Part shown: one piece after another, positions 509 through 56,420 of the stretch | How positions within the stretch are numbered: position 1 is the stretch's first letter | How the letters are laid out: the number at the start of each line of letters is the position of its first letter | NCBI GenBank assembly: GCA_047495785.1 | Contig: JBLDXI010000007.1 | Location: 3,906,001 to 3,970,000, forward strand | Direction: 5' to 3' | DNA: 64,000 nucleotides | Source of the DNA: Lepidodermella squamata | Lineage: Eukaryota > Animalia > Gastrotricha | Position numbers and translations under genes: made by a program | Notes under the pieces: generated by a model | Seen by the model: the letters and a program-made list of their open reading frames with translations, nothing else | Database searches by the model: none | Told to the model about the DNA's origin: nothing

Positions 509-1615
509 ACTCGGTCGCTATACTATACTTAAGATCTAAATTCGTCTATTATCATGCCCAAACGATAAACCTCCCGGTGACACCTGATTTGCGCTATTTA
601 GCGATAATTAATTTTACAAATTACCGATATCCGGAGTTTTGACATCTAGAAATTGAAAAGGAAGGAAGGAAGAATGCGGAGATCGGAATTTTCCAAGCTT
701 CTAAGTTCTTCTAGAAAAATCGTACGAGGGGCTTATTGGTTCGCCTACCTGTGAAGTTGGCAGAGCGCAGTTGCGTAGAATCGAGAAATGAGCAGACCCA
801 AACAGTGAAACCAGTGATCTTCTGGAAACCAATCAGCAGTTGAAGCAGAAAATGTCATGCTATCTATCGTATTGGGTCCCTTTTCTGCGACAGAAGTTCA
901 TGCGAGCCAACAAACTGCGGACCCAAGCTTTGCCCAATCCGACGGTTCCACCCTGCGAAAATAATACATGGGGGCACTCTATAAGATACACCGTCCACGG
1001 ATATTCCTGGATATTCCGAAAATTCAATATTTTGAGGTTATATTGGGGAGCTAATTCTCGTCAAATTATCCAGAAAAACCTGATTGATCTTTTCTGTGAG
1101 CTTGACCATTTCCGAGGTTCACATCTGGATCGTCAGGATTCGGAATTGAAGTATTTCAGCTGCCCATGAAGGAATTGCATTTATTGAAAATGTAAAAGCG
1201 TGGACAATAGGCGCCGACTAAGTATTGCTGGTACGATGCCGCAGCAGTAGATTCGGAATGATTCAGAAACTGTTCTATTATTTTAATGCCGGCGTCAAAT
1301 CACGTACTCGAATATTTCGGAATGCAGTTAGCAGTTAGCATCACGTTTCTTTGCACGGAAAACTTGAATGAAGTGACATTATTGGGTCTTTCTGATGCAG
1401 GCAGGAACCTGTCCCACAAAGCATTACATGTAACTGATTACTCTTCCATCGTAGAATATGCATCAAACCACATCATACCCAGTCTCATTTCCTTCCGAAT
1501 CCCCCGCTTTTTATGCTGAGACAATAATTTGCGGATATCAGTCATCTTATCATGAAGCATGACTTGCCACCTTCTGCAATAACTTACTGGCTAAAAATAT
1601 GTAATTCTCTTTCTA

Positions 1616-1940
1616 GCCGATGTCTCGCAATCTTGAAAATTGCGCAAAGCCGTGGCTCAACAGTTGGTTCACGCGGTGTTTGTTTCGCCGGCATGCTAGC
1701 TCTGAAAGTCCATAAACCAGCCGTGTGTCTAGAAATTCTTGGTCTGCGGCCGCGAAGCCTACGCCCCACCCCACTCAACAACCTCCGCGCTATGGCTTTG
1801 GCCGAGCTTGGCCATGTTGAAGACGCTATCCAGATTCTGCGTTTCGTAGCGCATCAGGACGAACCGAAAAGCCGAAGCTCTGGACCGATCGCTCGCAGCA
1901 GGCCGACAGTTTTCGCAGACACGCTTGACCGAATAAATTC
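1616..1940 (+). CDS. Exon of a PTCD2-like (mitochondrial pentatricopeptide repeat / MRP-S27 family) protein; remaining exons not resolved
   Basis: Acceptor ttctag near 1615 and donor gtgagt at 1941. RGVCFAGMLALKVHKPAVCLEIL...NLRAMALAELGHVEDAIQILR resembles the C-terminal half of invertebrate PTCD2 as I recall it. Confidence 0.45.
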
Positions 1941-2060
1941 GTGAGTTTTTTTTTTAATTTTTACTTCAAAGAAGTCGAAACAGATTCCAAAACACGCAAA
2001 AATGAATCGGCACTGAACGGCAAAAATTCATGTCTGAAACATTGTAAAGGTTGTTATAAG

Positions 2061-4224
2061 TTATCGATCACCGGCTGCAGATGGCGGGGGTCGGAACATG
2101 CCCCCGTGGGCAGTAGAATTTGCCGACATAGCCCAAGCTGGCTGGCGAGCGACTCCGCTAGATGGCATCGCACTGCCATCTCTGTTGTCATAAGCGTAGT
2201 AATTTCCCCCGGGAAAAGCAGTTGATGCAGCTGAAGAATAGCGGAACATGTTTGGTGGCGGCATATGGGCGCTGGGCAGCGTTTGCCGTGGTACTGCGGG
2301 TTGCATCATTGGAACAGCCGTAGGCATGGTATTCATCATAACTGGCTGTTCTAACTGCTGGAAACTCGGCATTGGCCGATGAGAGAAAGGCGCCGCGCTC
2401 CACTGGCCGGGCCCGTAGTAGGCGCTGTAAGCTCCCGTCATAGCTCGCCCATTTCCACCATCGTCATCATCCGATGAAGTTGAGTTGCCATCGCTACTTG
2501 ACGAACTGTCATCTTCTCCCTTCTTACGATTGCTGAATTTCTCCATCAGTGCTTTGATCTTAATTACAAGACCCAGTTATCTAAAGTTCATTCCAGATTT
2601 AAGAACTAACCTGTTCAGAAACGCTTTCTTGAATCATCTGTAGGCAAGTTGATAGCATAGCCATTCCCAAGAAGCAATAGAACCATGTTAAGCCGAATTT
2701 CCAGTTTACGTGCGTTTCAGTGTTGGTATTCACGAGCCCTGGCACCAGGTCGCCAAATCCGATTGTCAGAGTCGTGATGAACTGAAATTTCTTGATTAAA
2801 GCTGACTTTCAAGATAAAGGAATGACTCACCGAAAAGTAGATGGCGTCTAAGAACGACCAGGCCTCGGTGAATGTGAATATTACTCCACCAAATAGTACG
2901 ACACTTAACAGTAGCATAAGCGAAACTGCGACGGGCATCCTCTGTGTCATAGTTAGCTCATCTTCGGCATCGTCTTCGCTCGAGTCGCCGCCCGAGTCGT
3001 CCTCGAGCGCCTCGAGAAACGCTGCGTTTGGTGCGTCCGGCTGAGTTCGCCACTGCGCGACCATTCTAGCAGCCATATTTTTCCTTGAATCCCCATTAGT
3101 TTTAACCGACCGGCACGATCCGCAGCAACACACCATGTGATAGGCGTAATGAGCTACTTCGGACAAAAAGTTACCTAACTTGGCTAGGCTGGTCAAAAAC
3201 ATCGGCATTCCGACTAGGGCGTAGCAAATGAGAACGATCCGGCCCCAGCTTGTCGAAGGGGCGATGTGGCCGTAGCCGATAGTTGTGACAACAGTGACGC
3301 AGAAGAACGTCGCTGACATGAAGTGCCATGTTGGAAGCATGGTCTCGCAATCATCGCCAGTCCACGTTGAGTTGTTGAACGCGAATATGAATGTGTTCAT
3401 CGTCTCGCGGTACTGCACGAGCCGTTCATCTTGATTCAGCTGGAAATTGCTGGACGCGGAAATAATAGCTTCACGGGCTTTATCCATAGCGTTGTGGTAC
3501 TTGCCCCGATTCTGATCACGAGAGTAAAACAAGAGTAAAAAAGAGAATTCAAGGAATTAATTTCGCCGCATTGTCAATTCTGGCTGACCTTGAACCTAAG
3601 ACCAGACGAGCTGTGACAAGTCAATAAGAGTTCAGGATAACCCAGGTTTAGGGTATAACTTCACTGTAAATGATATCAATCTCTAACACATTCGTATAAG
3701 GGTTCTATAATTCGAGCTTAAGCTGCCCAAACATCCCGATTTCGGCCTGATTTAAGTGACCCTCCCAATCTGAGTCAGTGCTACAGAGCGAATCTCATTC
3801 TCTCCTGTTGGTGCTCGTTACATGGTGAACAATGACGGAAATCTTACCGTTTTACAACTCTGGACTTCGTTGTAAACCTCCATGGAGCTGAACATGTATC
3901 CGCCCAAAAAGCAGAAACTGATAACTCCAAGTAGAATTCCTACGTTCGTCCCAAACCATTTCAACATTGTTCGGTAGTGCTCCTTTTTCCATTTTTGCTT
4001 CAAATACTTGATTAAGAAACAAGATTAGCAAGTCTATATCTGTACGGTATTCATTTTAGGCTTACCTGGTCGTCAAGGTAAAGATGCACCACTTCTTCAT
4101 CAGCGCCCGGTGTGAAATCTGCTTTACCCTTGCTATCGTCACCTTCAAAGTCTGGATTCTCGCCAAATGCAGTTGAGTCTTCAAACTCGTGGAACAAAGC
4201 TTTGTTTTGCTCGGAATCGCCCAT
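2061..4224 (-). CDS. Two-pore-domain (TWIK/K2P) potassium channel; exons 4224-4066, 4006-3848, 3511-2831, 2781-2611, 2558-2061
   Basis: Pore 1 FFCVTVVTTIGYGHIAP, pore 2 YFS|FITTLTIGFGDLVPG, four TM segments. All introns are GT-AG and keep frame. Start ATG at 4224 is tentative. Confidence 0.9.
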
Positions 4225-4867
4225 TTTAAGAGGCTGTACTTCCCTTGTAGACACCCTTTCACCGTTTGACGGTTGACTTATCAAACGATTAGTAACTCTT
4301 GAATAATTGATTCAACTCCATGACAGACGAGAAAAGTCAATAAGCGCAGCTAACATCACCGTTTCGATTACTGCATGTAATGAAAGCCGTTAATTTTATA
4401 CCCATTATTTATCACTCTACACTCCTTAATTATTAATTTGGCGCTATCTATCATCATCTAACTTGCCATTTTTATGCTAGCTGGGCCTTCTTAATCGACC
4501 ACTATGATCCAAACTGATCCTTGGAAATGAAGTGGGGTTGGCGAAATTTTAGATTTCAGAAGCATTCAACGCCAATTAATGAGGAAGACGATAGCGTAAG
4601 GGACTTGGTCCAATCAAAAATCGAAGGTGAATTGGTCATTGCTAGCGCGTTGGCGCGATAGCGAGGCGCAACTCGCCAAAATTTGCGAAGTCTTGTTCAA
4701 GAAATGTTAGCGATTGAGTTGAATGTGAATATGAAGGCTCATTTGCTAGGTCTACTATGGAAATTGGAGAATCCATAATTTTGACCAAAAATATTAAGGC
4801 GAATAAACCAATTATATTTATTTGTATATTAATAATTTTCAATTATATCTGTTGAATTTGTTGACAG

Positions 4868-7781: not shown

Positions 7782-9598
7782 TTTCAGTATTAAAGCTGAG
7801 GAATACTTCCAATTGAAATATGGATGCATGTTACCTACGCGTAAAAAAGAAGAAGAATATTTTCGTATAAGCGATCAATCCTCAAATTCAGGAGCTGATG
7901 TAAATACTCGAACGAAAGAAAACCGGATATAGATGGACGTATATTGCGAGACTTGCCTCGGGAGCATTTAGTCAAGGTTGGAATCTTTGTTATACATAAG
8001 TCTCACTTGCTGCATGCTCGCTTTATGATGATGTCTCGTCCATCTCTGCAGTGTTTGACCAGGTAAAACACAAACTGGTCTTCCGTTGTGGCGTTTGCGG
8101 ATCATCGCAGTTACTTAGCTATTCCGGCTGCCATGCGTTTTATGATTTACGGGCGCAACGTAAACAACGAGCGCGCTCGTGTGACGGGAGACAACGAGGC
8201 GGTAATATTTATAGCAGGATGCGCGCACAAGATACCGCCCGGTCCCCGCTCACAAAATCCCACCGTCCATCTTCATCAGCACTTGCTTTGTGTGCGAGGA
8301 CAACAAGGCCACAAATCAAGAGCCACTAACAATGCAAACATGTCACCAATGCACAACGCTTCGGCAAAAATGAGAGTAACCACGGTATTCAGCGTATTTC
8401 ATCTTGATGAGATACATTCAACATTTCTCGCTGACAGCTTTTTTGAAGAATCTTTGTTTCTGAATGCCCGCCTGAAACCTGGACTCGAAATTTATCGCAT
8501 TACAGCTTTTATCCAGAACTAACTACCTAATTACGTTACGCTAATTACCGAGTAGCTTGATCATTTTCGATGAATTATGGTCGAATATCGCTGATCGATC
8601 ACATCAATAGTGTTATTTATTCCGCTTGTTTGTTAAGTGTGAAGTCATTGCAAAGGCCGGCAATCAGGTTTTTCCTGGGATCTGGTAGGGACTCGAGCTT
8701 TAATAGTTCTCAGGGATTTCTCCTAGCGAAAACCGAAGACGGAGTTTGACCTTACAAAAAAGAATTGCCAATATTTCAGAATTTTCCGAATGTGTCGGTA
8801 ACTCGCTATTCGCTATCCAGAATTTTTGCTACACCTAATCTACTGACCTCTGAAAATGCAAGAAATCGTTGTTTTGGAATCTTCCAGGAGCTAGTTCGAA
8901 TCAAGTTCCGTCATTTTCAATTTCCACTTTGTCACGAATTCTTTTCATGAGAATAAAAAAATCCGAAGCAATTCGAATTACAAATCAGTTCACTTTTTAT
9001 TAGACTCGTGAGACGAGAATCAGCCATAAGGTCGCATTCGACGACCGAGAAGAGGTGCATATTACTGCTATTATCATGTGGTTGTAGCCGAAATTCGCAC
9101 AAGGACAGAATACAAGAGAGAAAGCACTTGCAGCACAGTCAGACCTTACTGTTTCCAATTATTTACCGCGCATTTTACACAATCAAAGAGACATATTTTT
9201 CAAAAACAAATTTTGTTACCCAGAGAGCGATCAAATTTTACATCAAATACTACATTTTACGTGTAAAGACAAACAAAATTTAGAGAGGGAAATAACAACG
9301 AATTCAGAAGAGCGAAAAATTATCTGCGATTTGAAAACAAAACAATTTTTAATCGAATTTTGAGGACGAAGGAAACAACGCAAAAATCGAATGAGCATAC
9401 CCAAAAGTTATTTTTTTACCTGCTTTCAACAGGAAAATATCGACATTTTATTTCGAAATTTTTGTAAAAAAAAACGATCCGCGACAAATAGTATTTCTTC
9501 TCAAATTATTAATACCGGTTTAAGTAGCAAATTAAATGCGAAAATTTTGGAGGGCAAGAAATAACCGAAGTGGCGTTGGCTCAATTTGATTCGGGCAC

Positions 9599-12500
9599 TC
9601 AACCGTCGAGATATTTCTGGAAAAATTTAAGCACGTGCAGGGGCCACTTCTGGCGCACCTCCTTGTAAGGCAGCACCTCGGGCGTCGAGTCGCCCTGCCA
9701 TTTGACCAAAAATCGCCACTTGTCGACTAGCGAGTACAGGTCGCGATGCGGCGCCTCTCGCGAGCCTTCCAGGTAGAAGCACAACAGTTTCTGCGGCCGT
9801 TTCGATACCGGTAACACAGCAGCCTGCACAAGTGAAAAAATCAGGATGGAGATCCAGCTGTGAAACTTAAAAAACTCACTTTTTCATTTTTGGAATTTGC
9901 AGCAGTGGCAGCGGCGCCTTTTTTCTTTTTGCGAGGGTCGCCTTCAGGCCGAGTCTCCCAGAATTTATCGAGCAGATCCTGGCAGTTCAAGCTGTCCTCA
10001 GGCTCCCAAGTGTTGTCAGCTCTGAAACCACACGAAATGTTTCATAGATTATACAAACGTCCAGAATAATCAGTAATATCGTTCAATTTGACATGCATCA
10101 TGAAAAACATTGCGAAATGCTGCTTCAAACTCGTAAATGAGCCCCGCAAAGCGATTTCGGCGCCATCTAGTCATTTGAATAGACAACAAAATCCTTATTA
10201 CGCATAATCCTTATTACACAACACCCTATTTTCGAATGACTGAAGACAGAAATGGGACCGAAATCGCTTGGTGGGTCTCAAATACATTTGACTGCTAACA
10301 AGTGATAAGTGGGGTTTGGTGTATTTTCCAGCAAATGGCAGAACGGGTGTTGACTTGAAGAAGGACGATTCTTGGATTTCTAGCTATACATACGCATTTA
10401 TTTTTGATGAGGATTTTGAATTATAAAAATTCAGACCTCCAGGAGGCTCCCATCCACCTCAAAAGACACGAGACCCAAAAAGGCTTATCAATTTAGGTTG
10501 GCGTGGAAGCATTAGCTTGATTCTATCAAAATTTTTGAACATCTGGCAAGATTCCTCACCACAGATTACCCAAAAATCTAGACTGCGCATAAGAAAATAA
10601 CGTCAGAATTCCGAATTTAGCGCGACACATTTTTCAGAAATTCGCCATTTTTAGCCGTAAACTGTGAAGCCCATTTTCTCCGAAACCCTGATGACTGTCT
10701 ACCTCTTTTTGATATCGTTTGACTCCTCGTTCATTGATCTTGAAAGCAGCATCATAATCTCACAAAAACTTCGCCAAATCCAACTTTTCACATGTTAACG
10801 GTTATTATGAAAATTTGACAAATGCCTTTAGATACAATTGAGAATCATTCGAAATGCGAGTTTTGACCGACCTAAACTCACGTTCTGTACAATGACAATA
10901 TTTCAGGGGTTGACTTCAATCAATAAATTTTGATTTAAATGCCGCGATGGCTTGTAGCTTAGTTAATACAATTGTTTGAACTTATGCGACTTACTCGTCA
11001 TAGCCGACCCATTTCAAGAAGTAGAACCGCTTGCTGCCGCGGTACATGACGTCGACGACCTTCTCCACCTCAAACTCGTCCTCCTCGCTGCTCTCGCCGT
11101 CCTCATTGTCGCCGCCGCCGCCATTCTCATCGCCGTTCTTCTTCTTATCATCCTGCTCCTCGTCATCAGAACCGCAATCACTAGCCGCAGCCCGAGTCTT
11201 CTTACCATTACTCTTCTGCTCGCTAGCAACCGCTTGCTGCGGCGGCTTTTCCAGGGTCTCGAAGCACCCATTTGCCTGGACAGCCCTTTCGAAGTAGTCA
11301 AGCGCGTGCAGCGGCCAGAGTGTGTCGAAAACTTGTGACGACACAATTTGCATACCATTGATGCCGTTCCCACTCGCCAGATTATCGCTATTCGGCGTTT
11401 CATCGAGGCATTTCCGCTCGATTAGGTAGCACAGATCGCCCTCGGACTCGCGGTACACGGCTAGAATGCGCTGCGGTTCAATGTTGCCGACGACTTCGAG
11501 CGATTTCGCCCGATTCGCTGCTACAGTTGCGTTGCTGCTACCCGTTGTTGTTGTTGTCGCTGTAGAATTTACTGCCGCTGGAGCTGCGGGTTGGTGGTTC
11601 TGCTCGGCGCTAGCTTTTAGTGGCGATTCCGCGGCGGAGTGGTTGTGATTGCTGGATTTGGCGGGTTTCGACGGTTGTTCCGGCGCTGTTTTCGAGTCGT
11701 CCTTCTTCGCTGCACTGTTTACACTGGTTGTCGCTGATTGCGATTTCCTCGCTGTTGTGGCCTAGAATTAATGGAAATATCCTGAATGTAACAAGCTGTC
11801 GGCAAATCAATGTTATACAAGTGAACGATTTCTTGGGAAATTATTTTGCTATAATACTGCATCTTCAATCACAGAGAGGCTTCGAAGCTCAAATCTAAGT
11901 CATTACATAATGAATATGAGTGACAGGAATTGGCTATCTGAAGACTTTCATCCATACAACCTGCTTTACTCGGCCTTTGGTGTTTCTCAATTCTCTATTC
12001 CTATCAATTTTTCTTCCGCAAGTGAAGTAAATCATCGAACTAGCTGTAAAAGGCCAACATTGGAATTCATAAAAATAAAGCATAAAGGCTTATTCCGCAT
12101 ACATAATTACTTTTGATACTTGAAAGTAATGCAAATATGTATTTCTCATACGAGATACTTGCAATAACTTATTCTAATCCAAGTCACTAAAAACTTGGTA
12201 GAAAAAACGAGTTTACAGGGTAGCAAAAGCTTCTAATCCTCGTATCTATAATTGGATTGATTAATATGTGTTGGGGAAACTTCATTTCTTCTGACTCAAA
12301 AAAGTAAGTTCATCATTAAAGCGCTGCTTTCTAGGACGTCATTCGACTTCTTTCAATGATAACTTTTCCAAGTAACCGCCGAAAGGAACCCAGGCGACGT
12401 CTTTTCGCAAATCACACGAGGGGAGAAAAGCGCATAGTTTGCTACCCTGGGCTTAGCATGAGACTTATACAACCATTAGAGAACTCAAATTTCTTGATTT

Positions 12501-13432
12501 TTCCAAAAAAAAACAGACGTTCTGCAGAATTATCCTGCCTAAACTTCAACTCAACAAGGCATTATAGCGTTTTGACGAGCGATATAACTTTTTACATGGA
12601 AAGTCATCCATAAGTTTTGTTTTTCGCGGCGTATTCATCTATTATTGATGCAACAGGAAGTGCTATCTCAAATTTCCGATTGTAATTACGTTGATATATA
12701 TGAAAGCTAGTTCTTGGGAATTATCGATTGTCCCTCCACTCTTGACAGCTGAAAATAGTTAACAAATTTCACGCCTTTTTGATTGCATTCTTGCGTTACC
12801 CAACTTCGAAAAAAGCCGTAGAAATATGTATTTATATGCACCTGAAAGCTTTGGGCAATGGTTAACTGGTGCGTGCTGGACGTCGACTGCCGCGCCGCCG
12901 GCTTATCCTGCGACTTGTCCCGCTTCCGCGGCGGCGCTGCACTGCTGCTGCGACTACGCGGCGACGTCGAGTGATTCCGCTTACGATTGCCGCTTTTCGC
13001 CGACTGCTCCGGAGCCGCCACCGACTGCCGACTCGCAGACCGCGACGCCGACCGGTTGTTACTCGCCGGCGCGTCATTCGCAGCCGCCTCGCGGTCCCAC
13101 TGCACGACCAAATCCGGCGACAAGTTCGACTCGGGCTCCCACGAGTTCTGGCTAGACGGGTAGTTGAGCCATTTCACGAAGAAGAACCGCTCTGCGCCCG
13201 GGCTCGTCGGCTCTCGAACCTTTAGAAGGGCTTCGACTACGTAAATATCGCGATCTGGGTCCGGCTCGCTTGGCAAGTTGTTGTTGGCCGCCGATTTCGA
13301 GTTTGGGTTGCCTCCTCGCCGGCCGATGCGCGAGGCGACGTTCGACTGGACGGCGGCTTGGAAGGTGGCGCTCGAGTTGGACGCGCGAGACGACGGACGG
13401 CCGCGGCTTCTCGACTTGGCAGCGTGGCTCAT
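9599..13432 (-). CDS. Tandem 'double HP1' chromobox protein (CD-CSD-like-CD-CSD-like), 574 aa; exons 13432-12842, 11761-10995, 10021-9880, 9823-9599
   Basis: CD1 YVVEALL..FFVKWLNYPSSQNSWEPE; CSD-like 1 EPQRILAV..LCYLI..WPLHALDYFE; CD2 FEVEKVV..YFLKWVGYDE|ADNTWEPE; CSD-like 2 PQKLL..FLVKWQG..KWPLHVLKFFQ. Junctions are GT-AG and in frame (1725 nt). Confidence 0.78.
10125..10291. mobile_element. Small imperfect inverted-repeat (MITE-like) element in an intron of the double-HP1 gene
   Basis: TGAGCCCCGCAAAGCGATTTCGG pairs with CCGAAATCGCTTGGTGGGTCTCA. Confidence 0.45.
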
Positions 13433-13850
13433 TCACAGACAACAAGGCCGGTTTATTCCCGTTTGTTAATTCCAACCAAAACAAAGCAAAAAACTAGCAG
13501 GGAAAATTCAAAAACAAGATATATTTAAAAAATGTTTTCAGTACGATTTGTTTATTCAAAGATTATTATATCGAAGATGGACAGAAAATTTCATAGCAAA
13601 AAACGCGGTTCAGAGCTAACAACTACTCGCAGCAATCAAATGGCTTGCATGCGACCTGTGATCGGAATTTGAGCAATTATCACCGAGAAACACTTCTGAA
13701 CGTCGATTTTTCTTCTCCTGATCGAATTAAAGCATTGAATGCTTCACAACAAAACATCAATATCAGCCTCTGCTAATCAAATTCTAGTTGCATATATGTA
13801 CAATTTCGAGAATGTTAAGAGATAAAATGTAAAGACGTTTGCAAAAAACG

Positions 13851-14616
13851 TTAGATTGCAGGCGCGTTTTCGATGTTATCCTCGCCGCCAACTCGAGTTT
13901 GAGCCCCACCAGCCGCCGCGTTCTCTTCACGCGTAATCCAAGTCAAACGATCTTCGTAAAACTTGATTACCACCTTGAAATAACAGAAAAATGACAAATG
14001 GCTAAAAATCAGATCGAATTCCATACCTGTGGGCATTTCACGTTGGCCTCTTTAGCAGGGACAAGATCGACCTCGTCGCAACCACGCCATGAAATGAGGA
14101 AAAACAAAGATCCGCTCGAATCGGTTGCGCCCAGAATTTTCTCAGCTGGAAGACCTCGCGCGAATCCGACGGCTTTGCCTTTTTCACTGCCACCTTTTTC
14201 GGAGTCTTCCTTCTTACGCTTCGCAGGGGTATCATCTGCAGTAGATTTCGAACCTCCTTTCTTTTTGCTGCTTTGAGATGAAGTGTCATCGGCGGCTAGG
14301 GCGGCTGCTTCTTTACGTTTCTGTTCGAACTCCGCGATCAAATCGTGGCAAGAAGTGCAGTTTTCTTCGGGTTCCCAAGTATTTTCCGAGCTAAAATTTC
14401 AAAAATGATTGCAGTGTTAGAAAAAAAGCAAAGTACTTACTCGGGATAATTTTTCCACTTGATGAGGTACTCGCGCTTGCCCTTGACAACTTTGACATCA
14501 ACAACCTTCTCGACAACAAATTCCTCTCCCTCCGGCTCGCTAGCTTCGCTCTCGTGGGTCTCGGATTCGGCTCCCGATTCGAAGGCGTGTTGAGTCGCTG
14601 GCTTAGCTCGAGGCAT
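13851..14616 (-). CDS. Heterochromatin protein 1 (HP1/CBX1-3-5 family) paralog B; exons 14616-14441, 14390-14027, 13973-13851
   Basis: Chromodomain [18 protein letters not shown]|SENTWEPE; chromoshadow [35 protein letters not shown]|[12 protein letters not shown]. Confidence 0.92.
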
Positions 14617-14829
14617 GATTATCGAATTAAATCAATAAACAAACTGTCTAAATCAAATGAAGTCAGGCATGCAGTCAGAAAACAATGCAAAAAATTTATT
14701 AACGTATAACAATGATCTAGCAAAGAAGACTGATTCAGCTAAGGTCATACTGCACTGGGCCATGATTACAATTCAGGGGAGTACAGAATAAACGTTTCAA
14801 AAAACGGAACGATATTCCGCGGGATTACG

Positions 14830-15506
<677 letters not shown>

Positions 15507-18482
15507 GGTCGAAAGTTCAATCAATTGTTCAAATGCTAAAGTAACAAATCCGACAAAATGTTACACGCAGAGCTCTCGTGAGATCGCTTACGCTTACGAT
15601 TCCCAAATTGAGGTTTTACAGTTTGCAATTTTGCAGAGTAGCAAAAAATTACAAAATCCCAATGTTTATCCCATCCTAACGTTCTTACCCTCAACTTTGA
15701 ACGATGTGGATAGCGAAAAAACTTGGCCTCTACTGCTTCTTGCAGTTTACCGAGTATGCTTAGAATGAAAAAAGATCGCATGCAGACTTTGAAAGCACGA
15801 ATTTAGTTACTAACTGCGTGTTTCAGAAAAACCGAGATTGAGTTTTATCCCAATAAAGCTGGGAGGATTATAAATTTTGAATATTTTTCCGACCCTGCGA
15901 CTTTGACCATAACATGGGCGTTTGGTGTTTGGCTGTTGCCAATTGCCAATACACATATACAAGCACCTTTAACTGGACTGACGAAACCGATATTACCAAT
16001 ACTTGAATAGAAAATTGAGATGTCATTTTCAATTTTAGACGTTACACCTCACGTAATAATGACTCAATTCGCGGATGAAAATTCTCCATCAAAGAAAGTG
16101 ATATAACAATGGACATAGTGCTAGCTCCAAAAATCGTTGGCTATATTTGTTGTCTAAATCGCTCAAATCACTAGTTTATATTATTTGCAAAATTGTGTCC
16201 CTGATTTAGTACCAATAAGCTGAATCAACTGAGGCACTATCGCTGGACTAAAAAATTACATCTTAAGTTCCAAGTTCTGATCGGGCAATTTAGCGAAAAA
16301 GTTAAGGAATCCTCCTAATCTGTCAAATCATCAATATCCATCAAGGGAGTGGAATAAGGTTAACGAAACTCAGTCACAAGGCTTCACCGTCAAACTGGCG
16401 AAAAAACTGGAAGCGGCAAGACATAGGTAACCGAGGAAGAGAAGAATTTGCGCGCGAATTTTGAAAATTTTTGCTCAAAATAAATAAATTTGATTCAATA
16501 AATACCAAATCTATTCTGAGTCATATAATGTATTTTGTATAAATAAATGTCGCAAAAGTTTTTAAATTTTTGGCGCTATTTTTTCGAATGCATTTTTTGG
16601 CAGCGGAGAGTGCACGCCTTTTTTCTGTCAGCTTGCCTATATCTACGGTTCATGGAATTATGCGTGCGATACCGGCCTTCCGCTATTCAGAAAGTGACTA
16701 AATGCTATGTCTGTTTGATTATACTTATACGCATAATCTATTGCTGCCTGACACAGGGTAACTGTCGCATTATCTATTCAATTTAAGCTGTCGGGTTCTA
16801 TGCTGTGTGCTCTGACATGTCATTCAAAATAATATGTAACCTATTCTCGCAAGGACGCTGATTTTTAAATGATACCTGATTTTTTATAATCTTCCATTTT
16901 CGAGTTATATGCGCAGATGTAGAATGTTGAAAAACTTCATTAGATGAAAGATTCCGACCCATCTCGTGAAGTTGGTAGTTGTTTCAAGACAAGGCTTGAG
17001 TTATGATGCCTTTTAATAAGTAGGTGCGAGAGTTTATTTCTTTATCAGAAATTAAAGCGCTTCATTATCTGAGTTGATTGATTCTACTACATATTGATTG
17101 TAATGTTCCAGGTTTCGCGCATTACTACGTCAGCTTTCTAAAAGCGTGTTGATGCTTCGTAGAGCGAGCGCATGAATTAGGCTCCCCGCTTCAATTTCGC
17201 TCTCTAACTGCTTCCTTTTCTTAGGGTTTCGAACGCAAGTTCGGTATTATTGATAACTGCTTCATGCTTCATCAATGAATATTCTTGTCAATAGTTTTAT
17301 AATAGTGCATTAGTGACAAACGGCAGTTCCGCAAAGATATCTTCTTTACGTGCAGTGAAGTGCGATGAGATTGAAAATTAGATTAATGGTGTTGTTCATA
17401 AATTGCTGTCGCTGTTTTTAGGTAATAGTTACACAATTCTACATGCTAAGACTTTAATTCTCTATCGACTAGTTAACTTGAATTCAAACTATGTCTATTA
17501 TTTTCTACATCGATACACCATACTCAATTGGGCCGATTTTCAATCTTTTTGCTTATCGCTTATTGGCTTTTCACTGGAAATGGAAATTGTGCATACTTTG
17601 TGTGCTTATAACTAATTAACGTTAAACACGTCATTTTCGTTATCACGATAGTATAACGCTATTTGTTGATGAATTAACAAATTCAGGCCGACCAAAATCA
17701 CACCTCTTTCCTATGCCAATCGTGCTATATTATGACGAGTGTCTTATTCTTATTCAGGCCGATTTGTTTTTTTATTATATTTTATTGCCATAAATGCAAT
17801 CTTTTATGGACTATCGCTTCTTGTTGTGGTAGTTTATTCCCGATAGTTGAAGATTTCACAGAGAGCAATTATGAAGGGTTTACCGACAAATTTATTGCGC
17901 CGTCGTTTCATGACCATTTTATATTGCTCTTTCTGCTAAAGCACTAACCGATCGCACATATTGAAAGCCATATCTTGATAGGTCATAAAGAGCGCGTGTG
18001 CGTAATTTCTCGCGCGTATGCTTGAGAAAACTCCACGTGTGCGTATGTCTACACCGCGCCCTTTTTATACTTCTTAGTAGTTTTTTCGATAATAATCTCC
18101 CTTTACCGCGACAACCGCATGTGCTTATTTACTCACGTGTAGTGTGTATACGGCCTCAATGCACATGCGCCACTTTTCCGCCCAATATGTAGGTAGGTCT
18201 TTCAAAAACGCGCTTAGTTTCGAGAGCTAATTCACACAATATATGTTTGACTGGTGATTATCACACGCGCACACGAGCAATATCATAGCGAGACCAAGAG
18301 TAGTCAATGCAAATACGATAAATTACACGGGCTCGTAACTTCATTGGATTTGCTACGCAATTGATATTTGATCATGTGAAAATACTAGGCCCGATAATTC
18401 AATAAGAAAAGAGTAACACAACAAGATGCTCTAGGGACACGACGTCTCGCAAAAATCGAATTCTCCTGCAACAACAAACATA

Positions 18483-52682: not shown

Positions 52683-55441
52683 TTAGACGGCGCCCTGGGC
52701 AACCGCGGCCGCAGTCTTCGCCGCACCGGGCTGAACAGCAGTCGTCGCATTCGCCGCCTGCAGATGCACCATCTGCTCCTTGGCGATCAAATGGCAAGCG
52801 TGGTTCACCAGCGACGTCAATTTATTGACGTTAAACGACCACTCATTCAACGTTTCATCCGGGCTGGCACGACGCGCTTCGGAACCGAACGCAACCACGC
52901 CGGACAAACGATCCAGCTTGGCGTCGACCGTCTTCGAAACGACCAGATCACACAGGAAACGCTCAGTCTCCTCCGGGGCGAGGTCCAACAGCTGGGCCAT
53001 GCGCGGCAGACGAATGGCGGTGTAGTACTTGGACATGACGCGAATGTTGTGCTCGACCACGCGGTTTTTGAAAATGCCAAAACGGCGCTTACCGTCTTCG
53101 GTGGTGGCGGCGAAGACCGCGGCAACTGCCGGGTCGGCGCGAACACCGGTGTCGAGTTTCGGCGCCAGCTCAGACCAGACGATCAGCTCGTTGGTCGTGA
53201 ACAGGGTCAGGAAATCGGCGTACAACGGCAGTCGCTCGAATTCCGGGTCCGCCTTGATCCTGGCGACCAGATCCGCCTGCTCGTTGTCGTAGGGGGCGAG
53301 CAGCGCGTACAGGACAATGTGTTTCAGGACGTTGAGCCGCTTTTCTGGGTCGGCCTGCACGCCCGTTGACTCGTAGACGGCGCGGTAGTGCTTGCAGACG
53401 GTGAGGGCGCGGTCTTCGTGCGAGTCGAGCCGGATCATGAGGTCGTAGAAGTTGAACTTCAGGTCTTCGGTGCCTTCCTCTTTGAAGTACTTGACGTTGA
53501 TTTTACGCGAGATCATGCTGGTTTTCAGGTATTCGCCCGTTGCGAGCGTCAGGCGCATCTGCTCGAGTAAGAACTCGGTCTTTTCGCGCTTCTCCATCGT
53601 GCCATACGTTTCAACCTTGAAAAATCAATAAATCGATTAGAAATTCAACGAACTATGCCTATAATAATGAAGCTACCCCGTAGTAAAATTAGAAAATAAA
53701 AAAAAATAAAAATAAAAAAATGAACCGCATGCCACTTGCTCGAGTTCAATGTGACTCTGCCACGGCCTGGAGTCGAACCAGGGTCACCTCGGCCACAACG
53801 AGGAATACTAACCACTATACTACCGTGGCTAACATCGCGGTATGAGAGAGGGCGCGCAAAACGGCTCTTATTACGGGCCTATCCTCGTGTATATAATTTC
53901 AGCTGGGCTGCACTTGTATTTATCAGCAAACAACATACTTATACATTAATGATACTAGTGGCTGGAAAGATAAATTAGCTCACATCACGCAGCATAGGAA
54001 CTGCGGATGATTCATCAGGTTGCATGATTCATCATCTAATTTATTGCTATATTCCATGTCAATAGGGAAATATCGAAAAAAATTCGAATAATGCGCTTGA
54101 TAGAAATTTCGGAGTCTTAACATCCATCCAAATAGGTAAATAAATTTTTCCAAATTTTCATTTCAGAAATATTTTACTGGGAAAATATAATACATACTTG
54201 CATAAAGAAATTAACAAGGTACTCGATATTTACTTGTTTTTTCACCTAGAAGTTCTCAGTTGTATTTCGTCACAAGAGTAAGAGTTCAGTAAGAGAATTT
54301 TACATTATGGCATTCTAAAATTGGGAATCAAGGGCTGTAAATATCCAGTGTGTTTCAAGGTGTGTAAGTAAGCGGACAAGTTTACACACCAACATTTTAG
54401 AAATTTTCAATTTTTGTATTTCCTCACCTCCCCAATAGCTTGAAATTACACACCAATAGTACCTAATTTACACACCGAAGCGGTCCTTAAAAAATACATT
54501 TTGTTGATTTTTCCATATTATTCATAATTTTGGTTTTTTGAAGCTCCGATTCAAAATTATTCATGCTCAAATCGTATGTTTCATTTCGGTAATTTCGTAG
54601 ATTGCGAATCGCTACAAATTATACTACTTCACTCAAAAAATTTTGGTAGATCAGAAAGGGGCTGCGATTTGCAAATACACTAGGCTGGTTAACAATGAAT
54701 ACTGACGGAATATTTTTTCAAAGCCCAATTTTAACAATAATTTTCGACAAAAGGACCGGCCGCTCGATTTCTCTCATTTCTTTTCACTCATTTTTTTCAA
54801 TTTCAGCTTCAAATTCAATATTCTTAGAGTCAATCTTACAACAGCCATTTTTTCAAAAAATATCAACAAAATCAGTGAAATTAACGAATATGAATGTCAC
54901 CAACCTGAAGTTCTTGCATGAGAGTCGACGCCTCCTCCATTTTTCCCTCGTTCTCGCGGTACGTCGCCAGAATCTTCGTCAGCCGCGCGCGTTCATTCTC
55001 GACGTAGATCTTGCCAAGCGTAACCGTCCGCAGCGTGTCAATCAGCCGCAACTTCTCCGTGATATCCGCATCGGCGAACTTCGTCGTGACATACTCGCAA
55101 ACCTCCTGGATCATTCGCGTCACAGACTGCTTGATGAGGCCGCGTTTCTTCGTCAACAGCACAATGTTGTCGTTCAACGCGTCGAAGCAGCGATTTTCGA
55201 AGCAGATGCGCACGATGCCGAGCAGGACTTTGGTGGTCGAGTGCGTGTCGCAGCCAGTTCGCGTCTGCTTCTCGAGGCCGTGCAGGATGGCGAGCGCCTC
55301 GTCGAGTCGCGCCTTGTTCTCTTTCACCATCTTCTCGCATTGCGGGATTTTCTCGTCGACGACCGACGAGAAATCGACCTCCATTTTCTGGAGACGACCG
55401 TCCGAGGCGTACATAGGCTCATCTTCGTCATCGGCGACCAT
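52683..55441 (-). CDS. PSMD12: 26S proteasome regulatory subunit Rpn5; exons 55441-54905, 53615-52683
   Basis: LEKQTRTGCD; TLGKIYVENERARLT; QELQ|VETYGTMEKREK; PCI domain RVVEHNIRVMSKYY..LAQ-type helix, AKLDR; HLIAKE. Confidence 0.96.
53758..53829 (-). tRNA. tRNA-His (GUG), inside the PSMD12 intron
   Basis: GCCACGGTAGTATAGTGGTTAGTATTCCTCGTTGTGGCCGAGGTGACCCTGGTTCGACTCCAGGCCGTGGCA. Acceptor stem GCCACGG/CCGTGGC, anticodon stem CCTCG/CGAGG with GTG, T-loop GTTCGAC, oligo-T downstream. Confidence 0.95.
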
Positions 55442-56420
55442 TTTCACGAGGAATAGGAAGGCTTAAAACTTAGTAATAAATACGACCTAAGGATTGAAAA
55501 AGAGCGAGATAAAAATTAGCAATGAAATTAGGGAAATAAGGAAGGATTGAAACATTCATGAAATTTATCAAATTACGTCAAAATCAAATCATTTTCCCTT
55601 ATTTGACAGCTAAATTTTTACCTTATTTTTACCAAAGTTCTTCTACACATCCAAGCTTATGAAGTTGAATGAATAATTTCTGAGGCTTCCCGATAATTCA
55701 ATAATTTGAAATTTCTTGAAAATTCATGAAATTTAGTATTGCCTGGAAAATATGAATTTGACTCAACAATAAAACATAGGTAGTAAAAAAAGAAGCAGTT
55801 AATGCCCTCATTTTGCCGTGAAATGTTTAGAAAATCTACAAAAATTAACTCATTTTCAAATTCCAGAAAAAATAAAAAGATCAAGCGACCATTTTGAGCA
55901 AAAATCGAAAGATCGACTCGAAATCTAATCAAATTTAGGAAATATCAAATGAATTTCGTAAATCAGGAAAACTTCTAGCAAAAAAAAAGAATTTTTAAAT
56001 TTTTTAAAATTTGGAAAATGGGCAAATTTCAGAATTTATTAAAAATTAAGTACGAAGAAATCAACGCATCTCGCTTCCTTTCCAACATTTCAAAATAAAA
56101 AGACCAATTTCTCTTGATAAAACATTTTGATTGTTGTCTTCATTTCACTGTTTTGCTTTCACGCGTCAACCAAACACATTATAGAATAGTTTTTTTTCAT
56201 AAAACAAAATGAAAATAATTCCAAGTAATAATAACTGTATAGTATAGTAATATTAAATTGGGTCGTTGCTCATCAGTATCGTCGAGAAAATATAGCAGTC
56301 GAAAGAGAGAAGAAGTAGTAGAAAAACTAAGCACAGACAGCGCCAGAAATACCGACTAGTTGCTGAGGTGTTTTCTTTCAATACATCGGAAGATTTGGCT
56401 AATGAAAAAAGGCAACCGCA

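Follow-up and report, generated by a model that had tools for sequence, protein, structure and literature searches.

The function of HP1 proteins depends on dimerisation through the chromoshadow domain (CSD), which sets the number of methylated H3 tails read per complex and forms the pocket for ligands; nucleosome bridging and condensate formation depend on it as well. The canonical members, including CBX1/3/5, Drosophila HP1a/Su(var)205, and the two neighbours (HP1-A and HP1-B) of the gene described here, consist of a single unit, in which a chromodomain (CD) with an aromatic cage is preceded by an acidic stretch and followed by a basic hinge and a C-terminal CSD. In these proteins, PxVxL ligands are bound by the Trp of the LTW motif together with the C-terminal tail. 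More than one chromo-fold domain per polypeptide is found in CHD1 and CHD4; their tandem chromodomains, however, form one packed block joined to an ATPase, and the whole CD-hinge-CSD unit is not repeated. Tetrahymena Pdd1p carries two chromodomains and a shadow-like domain, and is not known to repeat the whole unit. Rhino (HP1d), a diverged and lineage-restricted HP1 paralog, is built from a single chromodomain and a single shadow domain. For Diptera, Helleu and Levine (2018, PMC6188558) describe HP1 genes as frequently duplicated, in tandem and with altered domain structure, and the 121 gene births of their survey fall into three classes only: full (CD + CSD), CD-only, and CSD-only. A doubled architecture is not reported for these young paralogs, and our literature searches returned no description of a chromo-shadow-chromo-shadow protein.

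The window analysed here (the whole stretch of 64,000 nt from Lepidodermella squamata) contains a gene, referred to as double HP1, which shares the caged CD, the basic hinge, the C-terminal CSD and the acidic stretch ahead of a CD with canonical HP1, but probably has two CD-CSD units per chain, and both of its CSDs are devoid of the LTW Trp and the tail. Like Rhino, it appears to be a diverged, lineage-restricted paralog, and, like the CHD proteins, it has several chromo-fold domains in one polypeptide. We estimate at about 0.7 the probability that double HP1 is genuine and expressed, belongs to the HP1 family as a lineage-restricted member, and carries two HP1-type units per chain, most likely derived from a fusion of tandem paralogs.

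Gene model and transcription

The exon coordinates, phases and GT–AG sites proposed in an earlier sequence-only reading of this DNA proved correct and yield one continuous ORF (Table 1). In exon 2, no in-frame start-type codon occurs before position 11458; thus, an upstream exon is required. The stop codon TAG (11764–11762) is located directly 5' of the exon 2 acceptor. From acceptor to donor, exon 2 is open without a stop, and the connection of CSD1 to CD2 is contained in this one exon, just as that reading had it.

Table 1. Coordinates of the double-HP1 gene, its parts and the neighbouring HP1 genes in the window.
Feature	Position	Strand	Description
Double-HP1 gene	13432-12842, 11761-10995, 10021-9880, 9823-9599	minus	1725-nt, 574-codon ORF
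Exon 1	12842-13432	-	aa 1-197; ATG at 13432; from ORF and splice sites; basic S/R-rich N-terminus, CD1, first part of the long hinge
CD1 (chromodomain 1)	13097-13246	-	aa 63-112; no internal intron
Intron 1	11762-12841	-	1080 nt, phase 0, GT..AG
Exon 2	10995-11761	-	aa 198-452 + 2 nt; single open frame, stop-free; S/T/A-rich hinge, CSD1, acidic linker, N-terminal half of CD2
CSD1	11279-11482	-	aa 291-358; diverged chromoshadow-like domain
Acidic inter-unit linker	11075-11278	-	aa 359-426; 19 D/E of 67
CD2, N-terminal half	10995-11074	-	aa 427-453 start; Pfam Chromo profile positions 1-27, 15.2 bits
Intron 2	10022-10994	-	973 nt, phase 2, GTAAGT..TTTCAG
Exon 3	9880-10021	-	aa 453-500; C-terminal half of CD2 (to 9958) and basic hinge (RKKKK)
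Intron 3	9824-9879	-	56 nt, phase 0
Exon 4	9599-9823	-	aa 501-574 and stop TGA at 9601-9599; carries CSD2
CSD2	9608-9799	-	within exon 4; Pfam Chromo_shadow 37.7 bits, cutoff 22.4
HP1-B	13851-14616	-	canonical CBX1-like HP1; gene model
HP1-A	14830-15506	-	canonical HP1; gene model

The removal of intron 1 (junction 12842|11761) is seen in two RNA-like contigs, one of 800 nt from run X1 and one of 244 nt from run X3, which carries a different organism label from X1. Within intron 1, the depth of X1 is zero. The phase-0 GT–AG joining of the CD1 exon to exon 2, predicted from sequence, is thereby observed in both runs. The removal of intron 3 (junction 9880|9823) is seen in a 524-nt contig from X1 only, and X1 contigs span positions 11134–11760 of exon 2. 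The other junction singled out for checking, 10995|10021 between exons 2 and 3, lies in a gap in X1 coverage (positions 9920–11133 are uncovered) and was found in no RNA-like contig; we infer this junction and the CD2-coding mRNA from the splice consensus and the position of the paralog intron. Intron 2 coincides in position and phase with the intron that interrupts the chromodomains of HP1-A and HP1-B, and joining of exons 2 and 3 results in a gapless HP1-type chromodomain. Intron 2 also holds high-copy repeats, with the X2 depth reaching up to 4800 at 10264–10839.

Double HP1 occupies the downstream end of an array of three HP1 genes on the same strand. HP1-B, the adjacent gene, is 53–54% identical to CBX1 of many animals, and its X1 contig terminates at 13524 with 17 extra T, i.e., at a poly(A) site that precedes the ATG of double HP1 by just 92 nt.

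Chromodomains and shadow domains

CD1 was detected with Pfam Chromo above the cutoff of 25.1 (40.1 bits; E-value, 3.4e-10) and has the chromodomain of Drosophila HP1 (1kna; E-value, 1.2e-6) as the top sequence match among solved structures. The C-terminal half of CD2, encoded by exon 3, matches Pfam Chromo profile positions 30–52 (22.7 bits), and CD2 across the junction scores 58.6 bits with a custom HP1 chromodomain HMM. Among solved structures, the spliced CD2 is aligned without gaps to the HP1 chromodomains 6asz and 1kna (E-value, 1.1e-15). The three aromatic-cage positions (Y/F, W, Y) expected from the sequence-only reading are retained in both domains, as Y64/W88/Y91 in CD1 and F427/W448/Y451 in CD2. 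The basic hinge typical of the HP1 family is present in each unit: the one between CD1 and CSD1 is 177 aa long, S/T-rich, with 26 K/R and RKR motifs, while that between CD2 and CSD2 comprises 37 aa with 10 K/R, including RKKKK. The acidic linker between the units resembles the acidic N-terminal tail of canonical HP1.

CSD2, the C-terminal chromoshadow domain, exceeds the Pfam threshold and is matched to CBX1 shadow domains by hhalign with a probability of 94%. In sequence searches of solved structures, the best match of CSD2 is the Rhino shadow domain (5xyw; E-value, 2.4e-4), followed by CBX1 shadow domains. In the Rhino structures (PDB 5xyw, 5xyv), YPLQVIEFFQ aligns with WPLHVLKFFQ of CSD2, a weak, local match that is no evidence of orthology.

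In contrast, CSD1 is the weak point of this gene reading. The copy in the window has no Pfam match at E-values up to 10 (threshold of Chromo_shadow, PF01393, 22.4 bits). Of the chromo-shadow-chromo-shadow polypeptide proposed earlier, a single ORF with a CD–CSD-like–CD–CSD layout thus stands, and CD1, both halves of CD2, and CSD2 are recovered by Pfam, but CSD1 stays below threshold. The C-terminal part of a distant ortholog (contig L001) matches Chromo_shadow at 19.6 bits (E-value, 9.8e-4; profile positions 23–50), again below threshold. A CBX1-only shadow-domain HMM barely detects CSD1 (1.8 bits), phmmer found no shadow-domain match to it among solved structures, and a phmmer search of 1.84 billion representative proteins returned only one true relative (P0001); another hit, P0002, was rejected as a repeat-protein false positive. 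A weak tblastn match of CSD1 at 54938–54976 is situated within a proteasome lid subunit gene and was attributed to chance.

In hhalign comparisons, CSD1 has a P of 4.8e-4 with shadow domains, compared with 0.44 for chromodomains. In a MAFFT alignment, CSD1 is colinear with shadow domains, and the cage aromatics are absent; the possibility that it is a chromodomain was rejected on the hhalign value and the missing cage residues. Both of its nearest Atlas feature clusters, derived from a language model, are Chromo_shadow (0.88, with 174 shared features, and 0.86, with 162). A family-guided AlphaFold model, which leans on an alignment purpose-built with shadow domains, has a pLDDT of 72.8, with the core above 90, and a strand-strand-strand-helix-helix order; an 18-aa disordered loop separates strands 2 and 3. 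The top structural match of this model is the HP1a shadow domain (Z 8.4; rmsd 1.8; 60 residues), nearly equalled by chromodomains (Z 7.8), with CHD1 and CHD4 among the matches. When AlphaFold was given CSD1 and the ortholog pieces alone, the model had a pLDDT of 51, and Foldseek returned no meaningful match to it and no shadow domain. Taken together, the weaker lines of evidence agree on a probable diverged chromoshadow fold for CSD1.

Canonical shadow domains share 27–37% identity with CSD1 and CSD2. Both domains contain the anticipated WPLH(A/V)L motif (WPLHAL and WPLHVL), and GATD of the neighbouring HP1s is indeed missing from the two of them. The hydrophobic positions of the dimer helix are retained in both. 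At the position equivalent to I165 of human HP1-alpha, each has Leu, whereas Ala (CSD1) or Gly (CSD2) takes the place of W174; the numbering is that of the established HP1-alpha mutants I165E and W174A. CSD2 terminates 2 aa past the helix. Since the Trp and the C-terminal tail of the PxVxL pocket are absent from both CSDs, recruitment of partners is expected to differ from that of canonical HP1. No PxVxL-type motif able to bind the protein itself was found within double HP1.

Sequence constraint and origin of the two units

In total, 27 variants were listed, 20 of them synonymous. The seven non-synonymous ones are confined to linkers or loops, so that structured parts carry synonymous changes only, and in CD2 and CSD2 all variants are synonymous. 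All indels preserve the frame, every indel of exon 2 being a multiple of 3; in the acidic linker, a 6-nt in-frame indel polymorphism was found at 11109. The ortholog contig L001 stops just past CSD1, and the comparison covers the portion up to there, with pN 0.195 and pS 0.634 for CD1, and pN 0.24 and pS 0.77 for CSD1, where synonymous divergence is saturated. Based on this comparison, CSD1 is under purifying selection. Word-index protein searches with exons 2 and 4 gave no match, which is of little weight because their length window omits full-length kin, and no exact record was found for the protein encoded by the exon-1 ORF. L002, the sole return of a metagenome scan with exon 2, was rejected as an unrelated environmental chromodomain gene.

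The sequence-only reading had explained the shared WPLH motif by an internal duplication of one diverged paralog. This explanation is not supported by pairwise identities, intron positions and the ortholog, which reads WPTVAL and thus does not retain LH. CD2 is closest to the chromodomain of HP1-A (28/48 identical; 20/46 with CD1), and CSD2 is no closer to CSD1 (19/53, ~36%) than to HP1-B (19/51). The phase-2 chromodomain intron is common to CD2, HP1-A and HP1-B and absent from CD1, and both intron positions of HP1-A are found in unit 2. Internal duplication was rejected as the preferred origin on the pairwise identities. Given that CD2 is nearest to HP1-A and shares its intron, and in view of the CSD identities and the WPTVAL of the ortholog, a fusion of two already diverged tandem HP1 paralogs appears at least as likely. 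An in-frame fusion of this kind would be the most likely origin of the double gene, with unit 2 probably retaining the ancestral intron positions and an HP1-A-like chromodomain.

Proposed mode of action and alternatives

In the proposed arrangement, unit 1 would consist of CD1, the long basic S/T-rich hinge and the diverged CSD1, and an acidic patch would connect it to unit 2, formed by CD2, the short basic hinge and CSD2. Both chromodomains are putative HP1-type methyl-lysine readers; as both cages are intact, one molecule could bind two H3K9me-type tails. CSD1 and CSD2 could pair either intramolecularly, giving a covalent asymmetric pseudo-dimer, or between molecules. Tentatively, double HP1 may be a single-chain HP1 heterodimer that evolved in an invertebrate lineage, in which CSD1–CSD2 pairing would create an asymmetric non-PxVxL groove, and the two different H3K9me-type chromodomains would form a nucleosome bridge of fixed stoichiometry, independent of concentration. 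Pairing of each CSD with its counterpart on other molecules would instead produce open-ended chains cross-linking chromatin. This arrangement is somewhat unlikely: the hydrophobic dimer-helix residues of both CSDs and their limited mutual identity, which permits self-preference, are in its favour, but the ~150 residues between the CSDs should suffice for intramolecular contact, which would be entropically favoured.

It is rather improbable that, within a real ORF, CSD1 does not function as a shadow domain; the product would then be a CD-long linker-CD-CSD chain that dimerises via CSD2 only, with four chromodomains per dimer. The lack of Pfam and solved-structure sequence matches for the window copy, the low pLDDT with the shallow alignment, and the poor separation of shadow-domain and chromodomain Z scores would agree with such a protein. 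On the other hand, the core of CSD1 is conserved at saturated synonymous divergence, polymorphism in structured parts is synonymous only, the hydrophobic helix positions are kept, the ortholog matches Chromo_shadow in register, and the nearest Atlas clusters belong to this family. Even less probable is the dominance of shorter products, either an intron-2-retaining CD1-CSD1 with a truncated CD2 or a separately started or trans-spliced CD2-CSD2, with the full protein rare or absent. X1 contigs end at 11134 and restart at 9919, leaving a gap in the middle of the mRNA, and retention of intron 2 gives an immediate stop (TAA, 10993–10991). However, each of the contig breaks (13304, 11135 and 9919) falls on a polymorphic site, the pattern expected of assembly breaks, and coverage is also missing over the first 129 nt of the CDS. 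The stretch between CSD1 and CD2, moreover, contains no ATG in frame (the nearest are M333, inside CSD1, and M436, inside CD2), variants in CD2 and CSD2 are synonymous only, and intron 2 has consensus splice sites at a position common to the paralogs.

If the two units are truly joined in one protein, double HP1 would offer a ready-made test of covalent, concentration-independent, asymmetric dimerisation in heterochromatin binding, and a doubled form would be added to the full, CD-only and CSD-only domain repertoire of the fast-evolving HP1 family. Its position in a dense array of genes on one strand may also make it informative on how fusion genes are born from closely spaced, operon-like paralogs.

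Gene structure and transcript evidence

Based on the reading of the minus strand at 9400–13700, the four proposed exons of the double-HP1 gene splice to 1725 nt, i.e., 574 codons ending in TGA at 9601–9599, which confirms the chromo-shadow-chromo-shadow reading frame (chromodomains CD1 and CD2, chromoshadow domains CSD1 and CSD2) claimed by the sequence-only reading. As the sequence-only reading stated, one coding exon links the CSD1-like domain to the acidic linker and to CD2 (its first half): exon 2 is open for 255 codons up to its donor. As a TAG stop (11764–11762) lies immediately 5' of its acceptor and frame reading revealed no start-type codon in exon 2 before 11458, this exon cannot be an independent first exon.

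Features of the double-HP1 locus and its surroundings (slashes mark exon boundaries)
Feature	Position	Strand	5' end	3' end
Exon 1	13432–12842	minus	ATG at 13432	donor CAG/gtgcat
Exon 2	11761–10995	minus	acceptor ttctag/	donor GA/gtaagt
Exon 3	10021–9880	minus	acceptor gtttcag/	donor AAA/gtgagt
Exon 4	9823–9599	minus	acceptor tgtgcag/	stop
Repeat in intron 2	10264–10839
HP1 array (HP1-A, HP1-B, double HP1)	13432–15560	minus
Proteasome lid subunit gene (Rpn5/PSMD12-like)	52683–55447	minus

Contigs of three sequencing runs (X1, X2 and X3) were compared with the locus. X1 behaves as RNA, with zero depth inside intron 1. An 800-nt X1 contig joins 11427–11760 to 12841–13303 (1080-nt intron removed), a 524-nt one joins 9400–9822 to 9880–9919 (56-nt intron removed), and one from the upstream gene, HP1-B, carries 17 additional T at its end (13524), which on the minus strand correspond to a poly(A) tail. 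A 244-nt contig of X3, a run with a different organism label and about 5% divergent, has the same exon 1–2 junction as X1; the predicted joint at 12842/11761 is thus found in RNA. X1 contigs run without a break over 11134–11760, taking in the hinge, the whole of CSD1 and the greater part of the acidic linker. X1 coverage is absent at 9920–11133, a stretch with the exon 2–3 junction and the CD2 message, and at 13304–13432. Since X1 contigs terminate at 13304, 11135 and 9919, each time on a polymorphic site seen in X2, a DNA-like run from a separate study, these ends are read as assembly breaks. The exon 2–3 junction is indirectly indicated by the restored chromodomain, consensus splice sites and an intron position common to the canonical neighbours HP1-A and HP1-B, where a phase-2 intron interrupts the chromodomain identically (GYSD/ADNTWEP and NYPD/SENTWEP vs. 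GYDE/ADNTWEP in CD2). X2 depth is present in every bin of the locus, so exon 2 is no assembly chimera.

The repeat in intron 2 is high-copy: X2 word depth rises to 1400–4800 there, against a flanking level of about 70, and partial contigs, loose ends and internal joints are numerous. It probably represents a small family of transposable elements.

Assignment of the four domains

Pfam analysis revealed Chromo in exon 1 (CD1; 40.1 bits) and Chromo_shadow in exon 4 (CSD2; 37.7 bits). A second Chromo match (CD2) is split by intron 2, with profile positions 1–27 encoded at the 3' end of exon 2 and positions 30–52 at the 5' end of exon 3. The window copy of CSD1 had no Pfam match at E-values up to 10. 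Spliced CD2 scores 58.6 bits end to end on a chromodomain HMM from 115 CBX1-type sequences and aligns without gaps to the Drosophila HP1 chromodomain (6asz, 1kna; E-value, 1.1 × 10−15). CD1 best matches HP1 (1kna; E-value, 1.2 × 10−6); the chromodomains of Clr4 and Chp1 come next, and Polycomb-type CBX chromodomains score below these. Both chromodomains retain the aromatic cage ascribed to them (Y64/W88/Y91 in CD1, F427/W448/Y451 in CD2).

CSD1 (aa 291–358) is the weakest element of the architecture. Phmmer searches yielded only chance matches among solved structures and, among 1.84 billion representative proteins, no true relative besides P0001, encoded by a 1895-nt Logan contig (L001) of a related species. 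A 13-residue tblastn match to CSD1 (KILATYRENEGKM) within the proteasome lid subunit gene was rejected as chance. The C-terminal part of the ortholog CSD1 matches Pfam Chromo_shadow in register (profile positions 23–50 of 52; E-value, 9.8 × 10−4) at 19.6 bits, below the 22.4-bit threshold. The two ESM-Atlas feature clusters nearest to CSD1 are Chromo_shadow families (0.88 and 0.86; 174 and 162 features in common), and hhalign of the two-sequence CSD1 alignment gave P = 4.8 × 10−4 (probability, 32%; same starting column) against shadow domains vs. P = 0.44 against chromodomains. In MAFFT, CSD1 is colinear with canonical shadow domains apart from a single insertion of 18 residues, which lies between strand 2 and strand 3. 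The AlphaFold model from this analyst-built alignment, on which it depends, has a pLDDT of 72.8 (32 residues at ≥90), strand-strand-strand-helix-helix topology and a disordered inserted loop. In structural comparison, it is closest to the shadow domain of Drosophila HP1a (Z 8.4; rmsd 1.8 over 60 residues), with chromodomains close behind (Z 7.8), and shadow domains fill the first 28 Foldseek ranks except for ranks 1–2, taken by two GEN1 chains. From CSD1 and its ortholog alone, the model was poor (pLDDT 51) and its structural search found nothing. Overall, CSD1 probably has a chromoshadow-type fold.

Contig L001 comprises the 3' end of the HP1-B ortholog, a spacer of about 380 nt, and the beginning of the double-HP1 ortholog, which starts at its ATG and includes CD1, a hinge of reduced length and CSD1. 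A single uninterrupted ORF runs from CD1 across the hinge into the N-terminal portion of CSD1, which independently supports the CD1–CSD1 link. The CSD1 loop is split by a GT..AG segment of 99 nt that contains a stop (L001:1645–1743). The contig breaks off 20 residues past the CSD1 helix, in an open frame and ahead of the region where a CD2 would lie. L001 (including 1–469) has neither the double-HP1 hinge intron nor the KCPQ/VVIKFY intron of HP1-B; either it derives from polycistronic RNA that was processed only in part, or the two species differ by intron loss and gain.

Between the window and L001, non-synonymous (pN) and synonymous (pS) differences per site were 0.195 and 0.634 for CD1, 0.244 and 0.766 for CSD1, and 0.468 and 0.823 for the alignable hinge. 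With synonymous sites essentially saturated, CSD1 is a protein domain under constraint and not a linker in decay. Of 27 single-base substitutions that distinguish the X1/X2 contigs from the window, 20 are synonymous when mapped to codons, and the other seven lie in the hinge, CSD1 loop, acidic linker or just after CD1. Within the structured regions of CSD1, CD2 and CSD2, every variant listed leaves the amino acid unchanged, and the five indel events all have lengths divisible by three. The CSD1 loop region (11291–11422) has two versions, both in X1 and X2, one identical to the window and the other with seven substitutions (six synonymous) and a 3-nt deletion. With a divergence of about 5%, they may represent a pair of alleles that are both expressed, or else homoeologous copies. 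The probability that all four domains belong to one expressed chain is put at roughly 0.7.

Origin within the HP1 array

Internal duplication of one diverged paralog, proposed by the sequence-only reading partly from a WPLH motif, is not preferred. CSD1 and CSD2 (19 of 53 aligned residues identical) are no more similar than CSD2 and the HP1-B shadow domain (19/51), CD2 matches the HP1-A chromodomain at 28 of 48 positions vs. 20 of 46 for CD1, and CD1 shares 35–43% identity with all other chromodomains compared. The CD2–CSD2 unit has the introns of HP1-A (phase-2 in the chromodomain, phase-0 in the hinge; both ancestral), the CD1–CSD1 unit the hinge intron only. In addition, the acidic stretch before CD2 resembles the N-terminal tails of HP1-A and HP1-B, and WPLH reads WPTV in the ortholog. 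The reading preferred on these features is that two tandem paralogs, diverged beforehand, became fused in frame, and the evolutionary part of the earlier interpretation is modified. Read-through fusion would be easy at such short spacing, as only 92 nt separate the HP1-B poly(A) site (13524) from the double-HP1 ATG.

The three HP1 genes follow one another on the same strand, separated by very short spacers. AATAAA occurs near 14690, about 70 nt before the HP1-B ATG (14616), and an unpaired acceptor-like site lies within about 40–60 nt 5' of each ATG (ccctgctag at ~13494, gatttag at ~14655, ctttag at ~15545). The array looks operon-like with trans-splicing; no spliced leader was seen in the contigs.

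In the full-text literature searched, nothing relevant was found on doubled, tandem or single-chain HP1, or on two shadow domains in one protein. A Diptera-wide survey of 121 HP1 gene births reported full, CD-only and CSD-only structures only (PMC6188558). HP1-B is only 53–54% identical to any annotated CBX1, so the host lineage is poorly represented in protein databases, which limits any claim on the spread of the double layout.

Predicted pairing of the shadow domains

Shadow-domain positions are numbered after the human HP1-alpha mutants I165E and W174A. According to the alignment, the I165-equivalent on the dimerisation helix is Leu in both CSD1 and CSD2, and the adjoining aromatic/aliphatic positions (Y/F, then F, then V/L) are retained in both. 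At the W174-equivalent, CSD1 has Ala and CSD2 has Gly, CSD2 terminates two residues past the helix, and no PxVxL-like motif was found within the double-HP1 protein. With the hydrophobic helix positions kept, the W174-equivalent lost and the CSD2 tail missing, the residues make dimer-type pairing of the shadow domains plausible and canonical PxVxL recruitment not plausible. The spacing of about 150 residues would allow an intramolecular CSD1–CSD2 pair. Double HP1 may act as a closed pseudo-dimer, a chain-former, or a dimer via CSD2 alone.
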